From Hyaloraphidium curvatum SAG 235-1 (Eukaryota > Fungi > Monoblepharomycota): a DNA stretch of 64,000 nucleotides. Below the pieces are notes generated by a model that made no database searches, was not told where the DNA came from, and was given only the letters and a program-made list of their open reading frames with translations. Below, in pieces: positions 27,808-36,794 of this stretch (the first letter of the stretch is position 1; each line of letters begins with the position of its first letter). The DNA lies in assembly GCA_025558095.1 (NCBI GenBank), contig JAIVFI010000002.1, positions 434,001-498,000 on the forward strand, read 5' to 3'. The translations under genes and the position numbers were made by a program.

Positions 27808-27870
27808 GCGCGCGTCCCCTTCCCGACGCTGATGATCGATCGTTTCTATGCAAATTGGGCGCGCGCCTTA

Positions 27871-27894
27871 TCCGCTGCCAGTTAGAAATCGGAA
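27871..27894 (+). repeat. Left terminal inverted repeat
   Basis: tccgctgccagttagaaatcggaa, preceded by TA. Confidence 0.8.
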
Positions 27895-29478
27895 CAACAA
27901 CAAAACCACAGACCCCCCGGCGTCGCCACTTTCAAAGGCCCTAGTGCGGGCGGTTCGGAAACACCGGGCCCAGGAAACCCGCATGGCCGCTCTCCAGATG
28001 TAGCGACGCGGCAACCGTTACCGTCGTGGCAGTCCCCAACGCGGAAACCAGCAAGACAGCTCCACCGGCGCCACTGCACAAGCAAACCAACTTTCCCTAC
28101 CTCCGGCGCTACATCGCAGACGACTTCTATATTCAGTGTTGCCTTTTGAACACCTTTTTGAAGAATGGTCCCATCACCAAGCTACAGGTCAAATACAACT
28201 CCAGATCCCGCCTTGCCTCTGCTTCCAGCCGCGCCTGCTCCTGTTTCAACGCTCCCAAGTCCGTCTCCATTTGCCGCCAAATCTGCCCAATCCTTTCCAC
28301 TTCCCTCTAGAGTTCATGGATTGATGAGCTCGCTTCGACATTCGGTCGCCGTCGTGCTGCATCCGTCCCTAACGTCCGTGCGCAGTTTGAAGCTCCATTG
28401 TCATGCACAGAGGGGGTTTGTGGTCCGGAGACGTTCCGAGATGGCAAAGGCGGGATTTGAAGCGCGTTCGCGAGGAAGAAGTGCGAACGCAGACCGCGGT
28501 CCAGAACAGCACAGCACGTCACCCTCGACGACCTCACCCTCAGCTCGTAATGCCGCACCGATATACGGTGGAGAACCGCGCGGCCGTCAGTAGTCTCTTA
28601 CGCGATTCCTGGTTCCACCCCTGGGATGGCAGTACGGGCTCGCGCGTGGACCGTGGCCCGAAAAACTGGAAACGAACTGCCGAGCGAACTCCCCTCCCCG
28701 ACCTGCAAACGCATCCCGCTTAAACGGCACCTAGGCGGCGCCAGGAGCATCTCGGAAGGCGATGCCGACGGCGCGGCTCCGTTTTGCGCCCGATCGTCGT
28801 CGCTACGACGACCGAAGTGCCGCGGTTGTGTCGAACCGCTGCGCTCCCGTTTCGCGACGTGGCATTCCACAGAAAGGTGGCCGAGCTCCCAGAATTCCAC
28901 GTCGGAAAACGACTCAAAGGGGATCTCGGCCGCTCAGAACCCGATTCTGGGGAACCCGCACCGCATCGGTTTGGCGCTAGACCATGTCGCCCGCCGGAGC
29001 ACTGGAAGCGACGGAGGTCAGGTGGTAGCGGCTCTCCTCCTCTGGAGCTTCAATGGATAAAATGCTTCGCTCGCCGGTGTCTGGAGCCGCGTTGGCATCC
29101 GCCGGCGCGCGGACGGTGCGGCGCCCGAATCCCTCGGAGCTAGTGGCCGATTCGAAATAAGTGCAAAGGCGGCGCGAGTTCCTTCCGGTCTAATCGTTCG
29201 GCCCTATGGAGTGGAGCAAGGAGCTTTCGCGGGTCCCGGGAGTCCGATCCCGCTTTGGCTGGTCCGAGCGCGCCGGAGCCGGGACCCCCCGGTCAATCGA
29301 CTCGGGCTGGTGAAACCCCCGGCAACCGGGCGGAGCTCCCAGCGGCAGAGGGCCGGGAACTGTATGGAATCGGGCTTTTTCGACGCGCGGCCTTGGGTTT
29401 AGGCGGGCCGTGTGGGCGCCGCACATTCCATCACCGACCCGCACGCCCGCCCGCCCCACCCGTGCCCCGCCCGCCACG

Positions 29479-32400
29479 ATGGGCGTCGGCAAGGGAAGAT
29501 GGCAGGGTGTTTCTCTGCCGCCGCGGCCCCCCCCGCCGCCGCCGCCGCCGAAGCCCAGGAGGGGCAAGCGGTGGACCATCCCCGAGAAGGGCGAGAAGCC
29601 GAGCCTGCTGTGCGCCGCCGTGCTCGCCCTCCTCGGCACCATCAACGCCGCCTCCGCTCTCGCGCTTGCCGTGCACGGCACCTCCAGCCTCCCCACCCCC
29701 ACCCCGGTTGTCCTTGCCGACCCTGCCCACCACGTCATTGCGCCCCCCCAAGTGACGCTGCTCCATGCCGCCTGCATGATGGCGGCCGTCGCCGCCCTGT
29801 TCGCACTGGACGCTGCGATGGACTTGCTGGCTGAGGTGCTCGGGGTGAGCGAGGAGGTCGGCTGGATGGGTGCCGTTGCCCGTTGGGTGGGGTCGGCGGC
29901 GTCCCGGGTGCGGGAGTGGGCGAGGAAGAATATGGGCTGCCGGGCACGCAAGAACGGCGGATTTCCGGTCGCTCAAATCGTCACACGCACCCTAGCCGCT
30001 TCGGCCGCCGTCATCGCCATCTTGGCCGCGATGAGGCGTGCACTCGGCGGATCCGTGACCTGGTCCAACCTGACCGACGCGGCCATGCTCCTCCCTATCG
30101 GCTTCTTCACCGTGACGATGCTCCAGTGGATCCAGGCCGATTCGGCGCCCCGCAAGAGCAAACAGCTTCGCCTTCTGCGCAGGTGCAGGACCGCCAAGAT
30201 CCTCAAGCCCTCCGCCGCGCCGCCCGGATTCGTCAACGTCGCCAGCGCGACCGGACTCGTATTCGTCGCGGCGTTTGCGTACATTCTGTCCTCTCCGTGG
30301 TTGCATTCGTTCCCGTTCGACGCCGGCGTCTCCATCCTCGTCGCGGCAGTCTTTGCCTTCGCCGACAGCCAGAGATGGCACAAGTCGGACACAACTGGCC
30401 GCTGGATCTCGGACGTCAGGATGACCGTCGGCGACTGGGTGAATGTGTTGTCAGATCCGTGCCTCGTAACCTTTCGCAGCGTGCGCGCCCACGTGAGCGA
30501 GGCACTGGAGCGGGAGCGCAAGCTACGCGGCCTCTCGCTCGCCGCACCGAACCGCCATGCCCGCCGGCGCACGACGCGCACGGCGCGCGGCCTCTCTCGC
30601 CCAAGGCTGCTGCCTCGGGCGCCGCGATGCCGCCTGCTCTTGGCCGTCGCTCTGGGAGTGGTCCGCGTGCTCTTCGGCGCGCGGTCGCTGGTCGGTAGCA
30701 TCACCGCGCTGGCAGCGCACGTGCTCGAGACCCTGTGGAGCTGGGCGGCCGAGGAAGGACAGAAGGCCGGCCCGCCGACGGTCCCTGGTGCCTGGATGGA
30801 CACGGACGAGGGGCCAAGGCAGCGCCTTACCACTCTGCTCACCGGTAGGCACATGCACTCGGGTCGTTGGCAGAGCGTTCTGATCGACGTCGTCCACTGA
30901 AGCCAAGGAGATCAACTGGTTCGTCCAGTCCGCCGCGCAACAAGGCTCCGACCACGATCAACTTGCACGCACCTTTACCTCCCCCGCCTTCGCGGTTCAG
31001 GACAGACGCCTTTCTCAATGGCTCACGGGTTCGTCTATTCCGCTTCGGGCCACGCGCATTCTGATCAAATGCCCACAGTGGACGAGATCCTCGCCGCGAA
31101 GCTGTGCCGCGCGTGGTTCCGCGCCCCGTGGGACCCTGACGCGCAAGCCTGGATGTCTGTTCCTGCGGCGGCCCAGAGCCGCTCGACCCGGCGGCGGCGG
31201 CGCAGGCGGTTCAGGCTCCTCCTCGGTCCCGTACTCGCACTCGCGACCAAGACAGCTTGGCTCGCCAACGAGGCTTTGCTGAGCATAGGTGCGCAGGCTG
31301 CGGAGCTCAACGGCGGGGAACCTGCACTGGGAGCCGACGACCTCCCGCCGGTGCGTTGCAAGACCCGCCAGGTGATCGAGGCCGAAATTGCATTCCTGAG
31401 CGCTCCCAGGTAGGCCGCGGTGGTGATGGCCCTTCCGAGCGTCGGTCCTCATTCGGACCATTTCGAAAGGCAAGTGCCCGGCTCCGAGGGCACGGCCAAG
31501 GGCAAGGGTAGGGCCAAGGCACCTCCTGCAGGAGCGGACGGAGACGGGTTGGAGCCGCCGCCGAGCAAGGTCGGCAAGGTGTGCGCGAGGTGCGGGGGGG
31601 CCGACCATGAACGGTCCAGCAACAGGCTGTGTCCGTATCACAAGCCAACCATCAAGGCGACGGCGAAGAAGGACGTCGAGCAGGTGACGGGCAAGACGGT
31701 TCCGTCGACCATCAAGCTCCCCCTTAAGGGCCTCTGCACCTCGTCACCCGCGTCTTTCGCATCTGTTCACGACACGCTCGCGCTGGCCTACACGCCCGTG
31801 GCAATCGCCGCCGCGCTGCTGCTCAACGAGGGCGTGGCGGCCTGGGTCACGGATAACCGCGTGCTGCCCCAGCTCAACCAGTCGCTGTTGCGCAGGGTCT
31901 TTTTCCTTTGCGCCTCCGGGGAGCTACGCATTCAGGCGAGCGATTCCTTACAGGGACAGGAAGAGTTCTTGCGGTCCTTAGAGCGCATCTGGCTGGGAGA
32001 CGGAACCACGCCGGGCCTTCGGGCGAGCTACCCTGCGCGCTTCGCAGCATTTCGGGCTCCAGGGGCTCAGCGGATTGCGTCGCCGGACCGCATGATCGAC
32101 CAGTACTTCAGCTCCGAGTTCGACAACATCTACAACGCGACGTTCAAGGACTATCAAGTCAACATCGAGGTGCACCTGGAAAGCGCGGCGAACCGCAACT
32201 TCAAGAAGCTCGCCGAGCTCCGGTTCGACAAGCTTCCCTGGTGGAACGCGGTGGTGGACGGCGACCCGGAGAAGGAGCTCCCTGCCGAGCGCAAGTCGGC
32301 GATTTTTTCAAGCCTCCTTTCCGCCAGCAAGAGCCGCCGCCGCCCGCTTAAAATCTTCAGCCGCACCGCCGCGGCCGGGGATCATTACCTGACGGAGCAG

Positions 32401-34596
32401 GACGTGGAGCTGGCTGTTGCCGCTGGCCAGTCGCTGACATATGGCTGGAAGACGCCGTCGATGCAGCATCACCGAAGCGCTGTGCTGGGGCCACACTTTC
32501 TGGAGGCGCTGCTGCGTGATGTCCGCGCCGGGCGCGACCTCCACGTTTCCATGCGAGGGGAATTTGCGTCGTGGTTCGAGGAGGAGTTCGAGACGATTAT
32601 GGAGACCGTGGTGCTCAACAAGGTGGCGAGGGCGCAGCTGGCCAAAGACCTCGTGGCCCGCATCACGAGCACCGGTGCGCACAAGTTCAGCGCGCGGCAC
32701 ATAGCGTTGGGGGAAGGTCCGGCCGCCATCCCCTGGGATACATTGCAGGCCGCTGCGAACACCGGAAACGACCTTCTCCTGCACCGTCGGTCGGGCAAGG
32801 CGGTCGTGCAGAACACGCTGCAGCACGGCACGATTGTCCTGCTCGTTACGTTCCTCCAGGAGGCATGGGCACGGCAAAACGATATCGAAAGGAACGGGAT
32901 GCAAGGCGGCGTGAAGGACTGGAACACGCGGCTACGGTTTCTGCACAGGTCGAACTGCCTGATCGGTGCTCTCTATGACATTACCGTGCCTGCCGGGCCC
33001 TTTGATCCGCAGTGGCAGCCGCCCTTGCCGCCCACCTCGGCCCTCCTGCCCTACTTCAACTACCAGACCAAGCACGTCAAGGTCGCTACATTCGATGCGC
33101 TGCTGGAGGTTGTGAAACGCCACAAGCGCATGTTTCCCGTCGAGCACGCAGCCGTCATGGACGATCACTTTCCTTTCGGGGAAGAGTTTGACGAGACCAA
33201 CGAGTACCACCGGCGGCGTCTGTGGGCTGCGGTCTACGATACGGACAGCCTGCTGCAACGCGAGGTCCGAGGCGGCTTCAGGGACAACTACGTTGGGGAC
33301 AAGACGCGCGCCTTCGCCTTCGCCGTGTCCTCCAATGGTGTCGAGGCTTCGGTGCTCTTCAACAAGGCGGTGCCGAACGACGACTTCGAGCCGGAAGGCG
33401 AGGCTCGCGAGGCCGGTGGTGCGGATGACGAGGCCAGGATCGTCCGCGAGGCCGCCGCCGCTGCCTTCCACGCGGGCCTACGCAGGGGCATGGAGCGGGC
33501 GGTGCAGTTCGAGGACCAGGCGAGGCGCGGCGAGATCAAGCTGCACGTCCAGGGTCTGGACCCCGGACCGGGCGGCTTCACGCTGGCTCGGCGCACGGAG
33601 GATGGCGAGGCTCGGAGCAAGGTCTTCTTCTACTCGTTCAAGCAGTATCACTACGAGTCTGGCGTGACAAAGCGCAAACGGCAGCAGGAAGCCCTGACAA
33701 AGACGATGCACGTGACCACGGCCGCCGGGCCAGTCTCGATCCAGAACATCATCAACGCCATCCCCGCGAGCACGATCACCGCCGTCGACGACAGCCACCG
33801 CCGCAACATGTACATCCTCACGCATCTCGATACGCTGGTCCGCTTCTACAGCGAGTTCCGGGACGAGCGTTTCCAGAACTACCGCGGCAAACAGATCGCC
33901 CTGGAACGCATGGCGCAGGAGCTGCTCGCGATGGAGCATGAGAGCAAGACCGGTTCGCCGAAAACCGTGGAGACCAAGGCGGCGCGGCGGAACCGGAAAG
34001 GCTGGCGCCGGTGGTTCAGGAGCAAAAGGAGGAAGCGCGCCGGCGGGAATCGTTTGCCGGAGCGCTACGTGATCGTTTGGGGTAACGCCAAAGTCGGCAG
34101 CATGTCCTGGATCAAGAAGCAGATGCGCGGCCCGTTCAAGAAGCTCATCGCGCTGCTGGAGGCACGGTCTGACGTCGTCATAGTCATGGAGGACGAGTAC
34201 GGCACGAGCAAGTGCTGCCACTCGTGCGACCAGTGGAGCCTGGACACGCGCAAGTGCCGGCAGATGCCCAAGGAGCTGGAGCCGACGTACCGGCCCCCGG
34301 TGGTGGCGGAAGGGGGGCAGGGGGAGGAGCGCAAGTGGCACGTACCGATGGTCATCCCGACCAAAAAACCCTGGTATGTGCGCTGGTGAGTGTGCTGGCT
34401 TCTGATCCTTTTCTCGCTCTAACATCGGCAAAGGTGCTTCAACCCCGCCTGCCCCGTCGACCACATCCACCGCGACGTGAACGCGGCGCTGAACATGCTC
34501 CGCCTTTACGAGTGGCGCCTCTGGCAGTGGCGCACGGCGCCGGGGATCGACGTGGAACAGACGGGGCGGCCCCCGGGCCTGAGGCGCTTGTCGTAG
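29479..34596 (+). CDS. Predicted 5-exon, 1633-aa fusion: N-terminal multi-hydrophobic (membrane) domain + CCHC knuckle + Fanzor1-type RuvC nuclease
   Basis: ATG in GCCACGATGG context. Exons 29479-30844, 30903-31028, 31079-31409, 31470-34385 and 34434-34596 total 4902 nt with no internal stop. Introns are 58, 50, 60 and 48 nt, all GT-AG and phase-compatible. The fusion itself is inferred. Confidence 0.6.
31470..34596 (+). CDS. Fanzor1 (eukaryotic TnpB-derived RNA-guided endonuclease) core
   Basis: CARCGGADHERSSNRLCPYH knuckle; FAFAVSSNGVEASVLF; RuvC-I VQGLDPG; YVIVWGNA and rearranged RuvC-II VMEDEYGTSKCCHSC. After intron 34386-34433 (GTGAGT..CTAAC..AAG): WCFNPAC, RuvC-III HRDVNAALNML and terminal RPPGLRR. 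Confidence 0.92.
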
Positions 34597-34602
34597 AACT
34601 GC

Positions 34603-34790
34603 ACCCATCATCTGGGTAACCTTCAACTCTTCAGAACTCCCATCGACCGACGGCGGCTCGCGAGGGCTGGCATACCCTAGGACCGAGCTCGGTGAACGAT
34701 GGGATCTCATTGGCCGCTTACAGTCGGGATTCTCGAGGATCTCAGCATTCCGATTTGTAGTTGGAAGCGGACTAAGGACGTCATCGATGG
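34603..34790 (+). ncRNA. Candidate Fanzor omegaRNA (scaffold to the element end plus flanking guide)
   Basis: Hairpin ACCCA/TGGGT (34603-34617). Nested stem TCCCATCG/CGATGGGA (34638-34704) enclosing ACCGA/TCGGT, GCTCG/CGAGC and AGGG/CCCT. Second long stem CCGCTT-ACAGTCGGGAT / ATTCCGATTTGT-AAGCGG (34714-34770). Lies directly after the Fanzor stop and ends at the TIR. Confidence 0.7.
34748..34772 (-). repeat. Right terminal inverted repeat
   Basis: ttccgatttgtagttggaagcgga(c), followed by TA. Confidence 0.8.
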
Positions 34791-34833
34791 CCCCGTCGGC
34801 ACGACGATCTCTATTCGGTCGATGCCGCGAGTA

Positions 34834-36794
34834 CTACAGTTTTGCTTTGCTGAAGCTGCACGATCTCGTACGATCAGCAAAAGGAAAGGCGGGGGATTCG
34901 AGGAGGACACGCACACTTTCGGCCAATCGTACTCGAGCTCATGGCGCTGGAATCCCGAATCGATCAGGAGCCGGTCGGCGGCCGCCGGACCCCTGCTGCC
35001 GTACGGGTATGGCTCGGGCTGGATCCGCTCCCGATCGATCTGGTGCAGGAGCGGGGTGAAGATCTTCCAGGACTCCTCCAGTTCATCGTTGCGAACAAAG
35101 TTGTTCTGATCGCCTTTGAGCACGTCGAGGATCAAGGATTCGTAGGCGTCGGGGATGTAAGCGTTCGAAAAGCGCTGCGAGTAGGAGAGGTCGAGCTCGG
35201 CGATGGTAGGCTCGTTGCTGTAGCCAGGCGTCTTCGTCATGGTCTTGATGTAAACCGCTGAGGTAACGTAGCATGAGAGGTCGGTCCGGCCCGTCGCGGG
35301 TGAGAGTTAGCATGTGCAAACCTTCGTTGGGCTGGATCCGAATCACAAGCTCGTTGCGGGCAATCTTCGAGAACAATGGGTTCCCTGGCACGTCCCGGAA
35401 CTGGATGCGGATGTCTACTTTCTGGTCGTCGAGCGCTTTGCCGCACTTGACGATGAAAGGCACGCCTGGCAAGGCAGCGGCCTCAGTAGGAGCCCCGAAA
35501 TGCACCGGCTTTCTCGTTCCCACCATCCCACCGCTCGTTGCTGACGTAGAATCTCGCCGCTGCAAAAGTAGGCACGATCGAGTCTTTCGGCACCGTCTTG
35601 TCGTCCTTGTACCCCGGCTTCTTGCCATCGAGCGACGCGGTGTACTGCCCGAGCACGCAGTCCTCGAGCGCGAGCGGGCGGATGTACTTCAACACCCGGA
35701 CCTGGTGCGGAACACCATCGGCCGCAAGCGAGAGCGTGCGGTTAACGCATGTGACCGCCACCAACATGAGCCGTACGTACCTTTTCGTTCCTGACATCTT
35801 GGGCGTCCAGCGACATTGGCCGTTCCATAGCAATGAGGCTGAGAACCTGGAGCAGGTGGTTCTGCATGACGTCTCTGATGATTCCGAACTGCGGTCGCGC
35901 GGGCCAGTCAGCCGTTGAATGCGTCGCTCCGCGATGTTGCGCACCTCGTCAAAGTAGCCGCCTCGTCCTGCACATAGCGTCAGCGAGCGCCAACGTGCTC
36001 GAGCCCGGCCCATCCTCAGCTCACCTTCGGTACCGATCATTTCCTTGAAAGTGATTTGCACGTGCGCAATGTGGGAGCGGTCCCAGATGCCGCCCAGAAA
36101 CTGATTCGCGAACCGCAGTACCAGCAGCGACTTGACCATCTCCTTGCCGAGGTAGTGGTCGATGCTGCCGGCGGACGGAAGAAGTTGGCGCAGGCAAGGA
36201 GGAGCGGCGACGACTGGCGTCGTACCGGTAAACTTCGTCCTCTGCCCAATGTTTGGAAATGGCGCGGTCAAGCTCGTTTGACGACGGCAGGTCCGACCCG
36301 AACGGTTTCTCGATGATGAGGCGGTTGTGGCCCCGCTTCGAGTAGCACAGCGACCGGAGGTTCGCAGACGCGGCGGCGAACACGTTAGGCGGCAGTGCGA
36401 GGTAAAAGATCCTGTTTGCGACCGGGCGGTCGCCCTCGAGCTCCGTACAGAACGCGTCGAGCTTGCGGAAAGGCTGCGGGAGGTTGAGCATGGTCGTCGG
36501 GGGCGAGTCTGGGCATCGCACCTCTTCGACGTCGTATTGGCCATCGAGGTAGCGCAGCAACAAACGGAAGCGCGCCAGGTGCGTCTCGTCGCCCGGGGCG
36601 CGCAGCTTGATGTTCTGCGTGACACGCGCCCGGAAGTCGTCGAGCGGCAGCTTCGTGCGCGCGTAGCCGACGAGCGCGCACGAGGGCGGCAGAAGGCCGT
36701 TCTTGAACAGGTTGAACAGCGCCGGGAAAGTCTTTTTGAACGCGAGGTCTCCGCTCGCGCCGAGCACAACGACTGTCGTGTGCTCGTCGGCCAT
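34834..36794 (-). CDS. ZWF1: Glucose-6-phosphate dehydrogenase, multi-exon; likely ends in PTS1 (-AKL)
   Basis: [61 protein letters not shown]. Confidence 0.97.

Follow-up and report, generated by a model that had tools for sequence, protein, structure and literature searches.

A four-copy element with TA-flanked terminal inverted repeats carries a spliced Fanzor-type gene and no recognisable transposase in Hyaloraphidium curvatum

Results

A 6.9-kb element with shared boundaries between MMM1 and G6PD

The DNA analysed here, referred to as the window, is a stretch of 64,000 nucleotides of the fungus Hyaloraphidium curvatum SAG 235-1 (contig JAIVFI010000002.1, positions 434,001 to 498,000). 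Within this window, the interval 27871-34772 represents one of four copies of a 6.9-kb element, termed family A in the following, which is bounded by terminal inverted repeats (TIRs) next to TA dinucleotides. Its sole gene (29479-34596) consists of five exons separated by four short introns and comprises 1,633 codons in the window copy. The genes flanking the element are MMM1 and G6PD, both located on the minus strand; they had already been named as neighbours in the original prediction made from this DNA.

DNA homology searches covered the genome to which the window belongs (31.9 Mb, 55 contigs). Four full-length copies were found, one each on contigs C2 (the window copy), C20, C12 and C18, with pairwise identities of 95.3-97.2%. 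Homology between the copies breaks off at most 1-2 bases from the predicted ends, and the flanking sequences are unrelated in all four cases; none of the copies shows homology ending elsewhere. Terminal repeats are present at both ends of every copy, at the limits of the shared sequence, and a TA dinucleotide lies directly outside both termini in each of them, as it also does in the copies of a related family (family C).

In the window copy, the arms of the inverted repeat (27871-27894 and 34748-34771) are 24 nt long and complementary at 20 of 24 positions. Repeats of this quality are to be expected by chance, as a dinucleotide shuffle of an 8.8-kb stretch contained about 0.8 such pairs versus two in the real sequence. 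The repeat by itself is thus no proof of the ends, which instead comes from the four copies whose homology terminates there. The predicted ends, 24-bp TIRs each beside a TA, are borne out by these arms and by the boundaries common to all copies.

Reading the full terminus from the sister copies gives TA-GTCCGCTGCC...GGAAGCGGAC-TA (TA-GTCCGC...GCGGAC-TA), a repeat of 25 nt with 21 of 25 matches. The first G on the left was lost from the window copy, so that its arms are offset by one base. The description of a complete element therefore holds for its two ends, which are both real, but not for this terminal base. When the genome was searched with the terminal 24-mer (up to 3 mismatches) and with a looser pattern including the sister family, matches were confined to the ends of family A and family C elements, with the exception of one isolated match per pattern, on C11 and C12. 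Within this pattern search, neither ghost or miniature inverted-repeat transposable element (MITE)-like derivatives nor a transposase-bearing element with the same termini were detected. Of what the original prediction proposed to look for, sister copies sharing ends and TA exist, three in number, and ghosts were not detected.

The copies differ in their state of preservation. The C12 copy carries a 124-bp insertion within its left terminal repeat (C12:399820-399958) with GAAATC on either side, and it has both of its termini. An 8-bp deletion disrupts the C20 copy, which also shows a Cys-to-Phe change in its zinc finger. The copies are mosaics: that on C2 is nearest to C20 in the 5' half (synonymous divergence, dS, 0.011) and nearest to C12 in the Fanzor half (dS 0.019), a pattern which points to recombination or gene conversion between copies.

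The features of the window copy are as follows (indel, insertion or deletion).

27869-27870 (no strand): left TA, putative target-site duplication, with a T before it (TTA); each of the four copies has TA next to its left end
27871-27894 (+): left terminal inverted repeat; terminal G absent here, present in the three sisters (GTCCGCTGCC...)
27895-28699 (+): 5' subterminal non-coding region, from 28339 onwards 85% identical to a locus on contig C37 with another Fanzor-like gene
28700-29335 (+): conserved non-coding leader, 640 bp, with frameshifting indels between copies; at least its 3' part is transcribed
29479-30844 (+): exon 1, ATG kept in all copies; N-terminal extension of 455 codons that includes hydrophobic stretches and continues in frame into the later exons
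30845-30902 (+): intron 1, 58 nt, GTAGGC..AAG, holding a 1-bp indel and an in-frame TGA; the loose end of an RNA contig at 30902 is the upstream exon of the sister copies
30903-31028 (+): exon 2
31029-31078 (+): intron 2, 50 nt, GT..AG; joint in RNA run X1, intron retained in DNA contigs
31079-31409 (+): exon 3
31410-31469 (+): intron 3, 60 nt, GTAGGC..AAG, with an inter-copy 1-bp indel inside; RNA joint in a C12-type contig
31470-34385 (+): exon 4, Fanzor core by its predicted fold, with CCHC-type zinc knuckle, REC/WED, RuvC-I GLDPG, acidic MEDEYGTSK stretch and the first half of the zinc ribbon
34386-34433 (+): intron 4, 48 nt, GTGAGT..AAAG, branch CTAAC, splitting the zinc-ribbon (TNB) domain; RNA joint in X1, an X2 DNA contig is contiguous across it
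34434-34596 (+): exon 5, second half of the zinc ribbon (CFNPAC), RuvC-III HRDVNAALN and stop codon TAG at 34594-34596
34597-34772 (+): 3' tail from stop codon to element end, candidate omega-RNA scaffold; least variable part among the copies
34748-34772 (-): right terminal inverted repeat (...GGAAGCGGAC)
34773-34774 (no strand): right TA, putative target-site duplication

A single transcribed and spliced gene

After removal of the introns the frame is open from the conserved ATG at 29479 to the TAG stop codon, with the phase checked exon by exon. The resulting continuous open reading frames (ORFs) comprise 1,633 codons in the window copy, against 1,624 on C12 and 1,628 on C18. Contigs assembled from sequencing run X1 skip 31029-31078 and 34386-34433, both with GT..AG ends, and a C12-type contig additionally skips 31410-31469. 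Since DNA contigs from runs X2 and X3 read through these intervals, X1 represents RNA and the gene is spliced. The first intron (30845-30902) is likewise shown by an RNA contig, in which 29 unplaced letters correspond to the upstream exon of the sister copies. A model with two separate genes, a 496-residue ORF and the Fanzor ORF, and a frameshift in the window copy was dropped because the RNA-supported 58-nt intron removes both the indel and the TGA. Approximately 16% of the RNA depth at 31586-31590 bears letters unique to the window copy, which indicates that this copy is transcribed as well.

A number of X1 contigs exit the element at 30226, 31188, 31497 and 31653 and continue into at least 255 letters that are absent from all loci compared. 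Chimeric assembly, further relatives or alternative transcripts may account for them.

Judged from substitution patterns among the copies, exon 4 shows the signature of purifying selection, with ratios of non-synonymous to synonymous changes (dN/dS) of 0.19-0.50 and 25, 35 and 80 variable sites at the first, second and third codon position, respectively. For exon 1, all indels are multiples of three and dN/dS amounts to 0.46-0.82, a weak purifying signal.

In the public annotation, the C12 copy is represented by NCBI 'hypothetical protein DFJ74DRAFT_53291 [Hyaloraphidium curvatum]' of 981 residues, equivalent to window positions 31426-34389. This model is an unspliced ORF that starts in intron 3 and stops in intron 4, and it consequently lacks the exon encoding RuvC-III and the second half of the zinc ribbon. 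The gene structure given here restores this omitted exon with its catalytic motif.

The predicted protein has a Fanzor1-type fold

Protein searches were run exon by exon, and the fold was modelled for exon 4 rather than for the joined five-exon protein. Pfam searches with the long ORFs of the element found nothing, and phmmer and profile searches against PDB sequences yielded nothing useful. Only weak matches to PF07282 (OrfB zinc ribbon/Cas12f1-like TNB) were obtained, at model positions 17-43 for exon 4 (E 0.11) and 49-60 for exon 5 (E 0.12). The two exons match complementary halves of this model, and the matches are weak because intron 4 splits the domain.

With sequence tools performing weakly, it was relatives and the fold that identified the protein. 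Among 1.84 billion cluster representatives scanned with HMMER, only 32 relatives were recovered at E values up to 0.001; in a set of 18 aligned relatives, eight have a match to PF07282, the best at E 3.7e-11. Exons 4 and 5 present the motifs GLDPG, YGTSKCCHSC, CFNPAC and HRDVNAALN in this order, in agreement with the arrangement D ... [TS][TS]xx-C4 zinc finger ... RD described for Fanzor1 (PMC3627910). An AlphaFold model of exon 4, built on the alignment of these relatives, reached a predicted local distance difference test score (pLDDT) of 76.5 and a predicted template modelling score (pTM) of 0.73. The seven best Foldseek matches of this model in the PDB are all Fanzors (SpuFz, PpFz and GtFz; E 3e-11 to 2.6e-8, probability 1.00), the best being Spizellomyces SpuFz (E 3e-11 to 2e-10). 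By its modelled WED/REC/RuvC fold, the cargo is a Fanzor1-type protein, and it presumably acts as a nuclease.

The relatives outside this genome begin just before the zinc knuckle, which makes the putative 607-residue N-terminal extension special to family A. It contains six or seven hydrophobic stretches and has no family match in Pfam and a low Atlas recognition score. The possibility that the extension is a decayed transposase was rejected, as a BLASTP comparison with an 822-residue DDE_3 protein of this genome gave E > 1 and Pfam returned nothing. A metagenome scan found no relatives, and no terminal repeats were seen on the contig of one outside relative.

A leader shared between Fanzor families and a conserved 3' tail

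The 640-bp leader ends 143 bp upstream of the ATG. It is non-coding, given that 1-bp indels and disagreeing open frames occur between copies. Overall, leader DNA is 74-87% identical across its occurrences: identity is 85% to the C37 locus and still 74-75% to Fanzor families whose proteins are merely 30-36% identical. Leader copies are located at L012:4766-5400, L013:8950-9581(-), L014:9075-9703(-), L016:8270-8943(-), L015:8495-9165(-) and L017:7365-8060. On C37 (L025:561-1907, L017:8683-9999), a divergent Fanzor-like gene (AIDFG ... EEYTSQ) lies downstream of the 85%-identical copy.

No Rfam match was found for the leader. Its consensus fold contains 9 compensated pairs, compared to 5.1 +/- 1.4 in shuffles and 0-3 when the partners were slid against each other; this structure comes from the very sequences that were counted, which represent few lineages. 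Candidate roles for the leader are a promoter or 5' untranslated region module and a structured RNA.

At the opposite end, the 3' tail measures 176 nt and ends in the right repeat. An assembled RNA contig extends to 34771, the position at which the copies first differ. By analogy to related systems, a guide (omega) RNA would be produced from this right end.

Four insertion sites share only the TA dinucleotide

Removal of the element together with one TA at the window site yields CCTTAAGG, reproducing the joined site that had been described; the other three sites treated in the same manner read TGTTAGGA, CCTTAGGG and CGGTATCA. With their surroundings, and with one TA kept, the sites are listed below.

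C2: GCGCC-T-TA-AGGACG
C20: GTTG-T-TA-GGATAT
C12: AGTCC-T-TA-GGGACG
C18: TTACGG-TA-TCAAGA

Only the TA is invariant across the four sites. The palindrome CCTTAAGG, proposed in the original prediction as the target, is specific to the window site and in part to the C12 site (CCTTAGGG), and hence it is no general target. The trait that does recur is asymmetric: counting family A and the sister family, the left TA has a T before it in 5 of 6 insertions, whereas A follows the right TA in only 1 of 7, a pattern noticed post hoc. Also noticed post hoc, 10 of 11 positions are shared between the C2 and C12 sites (CCTTA/TA(A/G)GGACG), their wider flanks being unrelated; the copies they hold are the closest pair in the Fanzor half (dS 0.019). 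The combination of T and TA on the left flank resembles motifs that have been reported for Fanzors, namely TTA and CATA (PMC10530073, PMC10432273).

A 3-bp duplication as made by PIF/Harbinger elements and a TTAA duplication of the piggyBac type were both rejected, as neither fits the flanks. An RNA contig on the G6PD side (window 34779-35090) begins at 34779, five bases from the right TA, which puts the element upstream of MMM1 and almost precisely where the G6PD transcript ends.

DDE transposases occur elsewhere in the genome

Six-frame genome searches with PF13358, PF01359 and PF03184, together with Pfam searches on ORFs, placed no DDE domain inside any of the four copies. Elsewhere in the genome, at least 39 DDE_3 (PF13358) matches and one DDE_1 match were found, while the six-frame search with the mariner-type profile PF01359 gave no match. 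The appearance of a non-autonomous IS630/Tc1/mariner-type element that had been recognised in the window is therefore common to the family: all copies have TIRs, flanking TAs and a Fanzor gene, and none has a recognisable transposase. The nuclease gene had been taken for the only recognisable cargo, which stands as far as a Fanzor gene without a transposase is concerned; the cargo is, however, more elaborate than this, with a five-exon gene of 1,633 codons, a 607-residue N-terminal extension and the 640-bp leader.

At C5, C3 and C15 the shared leader is preceded by an 822-residue ORF of the IS630/Tc1-like type (HTH_33 and DDE_3) or by a remnant of this ORF, and a further copy is present on C23, where the leader region falls beyond the DNA covered. 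The respective locations are L024:2274-4739(-) on C5, L028 on C23, L030/L032 on C3 and L029/L031 on C15. Downstream of the 822-residue gene, the flanking DNA shows homology with family C in the left subterminal region of the latter. These arrangements hint that autonomous relatives exist, and the 822-residue gene locus may be one of them. Within the DNA examined, neither A- or C-like repeats near the 822-residue transposase loci nor the ends of those elements were seen.

Discussion

A transposon probably moved in trans

TIRs combined with a TA target-site duplication are the signature of IS630/Tc1/mariner elements. We consider family A to be a four-copy transposon of this kind, devoid of a transposase gene, whose five-exon Fanzor1-type gene would help it to persist and whose movement would be effected in trans, and assign a probability of roughly 0.7 to this explanation. 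In such a scenario, a DDE transposase supplied from elsewhere, for which the many IS630/Tc1-type DDE_3 genes of the genome offer plausible sources, would move the element by cut-and-paste. The right end would give rise to a guide RNA, starting in the 176-nt tail and reading into the flank, on the pattern of SpuFz1 and TnpB. Sites free of the element that have a TTA-like motif beside the sequence of that flank would then be cleaved by Fanzor, and cutting would favour retention or copying of the element. If the TA is indeed a duplication, the element-free spacer between MMM1 and G6PD would read ...GCGCCTTAAGGACG... with a single TA.

Several observations weigh against this explanation. The window copy is without the terminal G of its left repeat, and a divergence of 3-5% among the copies means that activity may be old. 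The searches for a partner element or ghosts with shared termini remained negative, unlike the situation in SPu-1 of Spizellomyces punctatus. No contig bridging the empty site was seen among the placed contigs, which cover the right junction of the window copy, and the TA could be part of the termini rather than a duplication. Furthermore, no excess of folding energy was found for the 3' tail on either strand relative to shuffled sequence (z 0.5), and the coding evidence for the N-terminal 455 codons is weak, with a codon-position bias that is not significant and a low Atlas recognition score.

The strongest alternative, though an unlikely one, dispenses with a DDE transposase altogether. Fanzor, alone or with the 607-residue extension, would spread the element by RNA-guided homing or targeted insertion: a site matching the guide would be cut, the break would be repaired from, or would capture, a copy of the element, and TTA would be the motif of the nuclease. 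The lack of a partner with matching ends and of ghosts would fit this scheme. So would the asymmetric flank (left T in 5/6 versus right A in 1/7), which is not expected of a transposase that targets TA symmetrically, and the location of the C2 and C12 copies, the closest in their Fanzor halves, in near-identical sites (10/11 positions). However, TIRs with TA at both ends are the product of DDE cut-and-paste, and such enzymes abound in this genome, whereas neither Fanzor nor TnpB is known for inserting DNA. The likeness of sites comes from a single pair of copies, and homing by repair needs homology, but the flanks are unrelated.

Slightly less probable still is that the TA belongs to the element. 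The termini would then be TAGTCC...GGACTA, with no duplication or a different one, and the element would not be of the IS630/Tc1/mariner type. The flanks do not settle the matter, since the site is still palindromic (CCTAGG) once both TAs are removed. Still, TA flanks and TIRs are usual for Fanzor1-only elements with Mariner-type ends (PMC3627910), and the related family on C7 and C21 has TA outside termini that otherwise differ.

To about the same small extent we would credit the idea that the element's own Fanzor steers the choice of target or the persistence of copies, the TTA on the left being the nuclease motif, copies landing or surviving at sites that resemble the right flank of the donor, and the leader being a functional RNA or DNA module. 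It is suggested by the likeness between the C2 and C12 sites. A Fanzor-steered element of this kind, if real, would amount to a naturally occurring eukaryotic system for RNA-aimed insertion or homing. Origin of the four copies by segmental duplication or as an assembly artefact, for which nothing but the modest copy number speaks, is highly improbable, as the flanks are unrelated up to the TA in all copies on four contigs and the C12 junction recurs in independent DNA contigs from another sample. Of these explanations, movement in trans by a DDE transposase is the most likely.

Comparison with known Fanzor and TnpB elements

Elements in which TIRs and TA duplications enclose only a Fanzor1 gene were described in 2013, including SPu-1 and types with Mariner ends (Bao and Jurka 2013, PMC3627910), and family A belongs to this kind. 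Traits of its own are the size, the four introns, the N-terminal extension, the shared leader, and the lack of ghosts and of a visible partner. Among the papers searched, none dealt with both Fanzor and Hyaloraphidium, and none on Fanzors was found for this fungal lineage. Few eukaryotic Fanzor elements have exact ends, a census of copies and a gene model supported by transcripts, and family A is one of them. It thereby provides material for three questions: what moves transposase-less Fanzor elements, how the left-flank motif is linked to the nuclease, and what the shared leader is.

A comparison within the same genome is provided by the sister Fanzor families, i.e., family C (C7, C21 and C15) and the loci on C3, C5 and C37, which all have the 640-bp leader in common with family A. 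Family C has TA-GT... termini with the inner motif ATCGGA and encodes a Fanzor that is 30-36% identical to that of family A. The sister families differ in their terminal sequences and do not have the N-terminal extension. The 822-residue HTH_33 and DDE_3 gene or remnant that precedes the leader at three of these loci has no counterpart in family A.

SPu-1, dissected in 2023, is the element for which a guide RNA was shown with SpuFz1 (Saito et al. 2023, PMC10432273). Both SPu-1 and family A reside in fungi of chytrid grade, carry Fanzor1 as their only cargo, are flanked by TA and occur in several copies per genome. However, SPu-1 is 2.1 kb long with a single open frame of 633 residues, in contrast to 6.9 kb, 1,633 codons and four introns in family A, and neither the 607-residue extension nor the 640-bp leader is a trait of SPu-1. 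SPu-1 amounts to 42 loci and 134 ghosts versus four copies and no ghosts. Its repeats of 30-33 nt are unrelated to those of family A, and in both elements conserved bases lie upstream of the left repeat only, CA in SPu-1 and T in family A. Family A is thus not a member of the SPu-1 family, which is characterised by a length of about 2.1 kb, an intronless ORF and ghosts sharing the repeats.

Among the Fanzor1-only elements with Mariner ends, PUl-4 resembles family A in carrying Fanzor1 alone, in its TA duplications and in a presumed Mariner/Tc1 transposase acting in trans (PMC3627910). PUl-4 has exactly the repeats found in Mariner elements with a confirmed transposase, whereas no such partner of family A was detected in the genome searched.

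TnpB-only derivatives of IS200/IS605, with the TnpB/omega-RNA retention model, are a bacterial parallel in so far as they, too, combine an RNA-guided RuvC nuclease with a mobile element that has no transposase, the right end being the expected source of the guide and the left flank that of the motif. These elements have neither TIRs nor duplications and depend on a Y1 or serine transposase, while family A is bounded by TIR/TA ends and carries a spliced eukaryotic gene.

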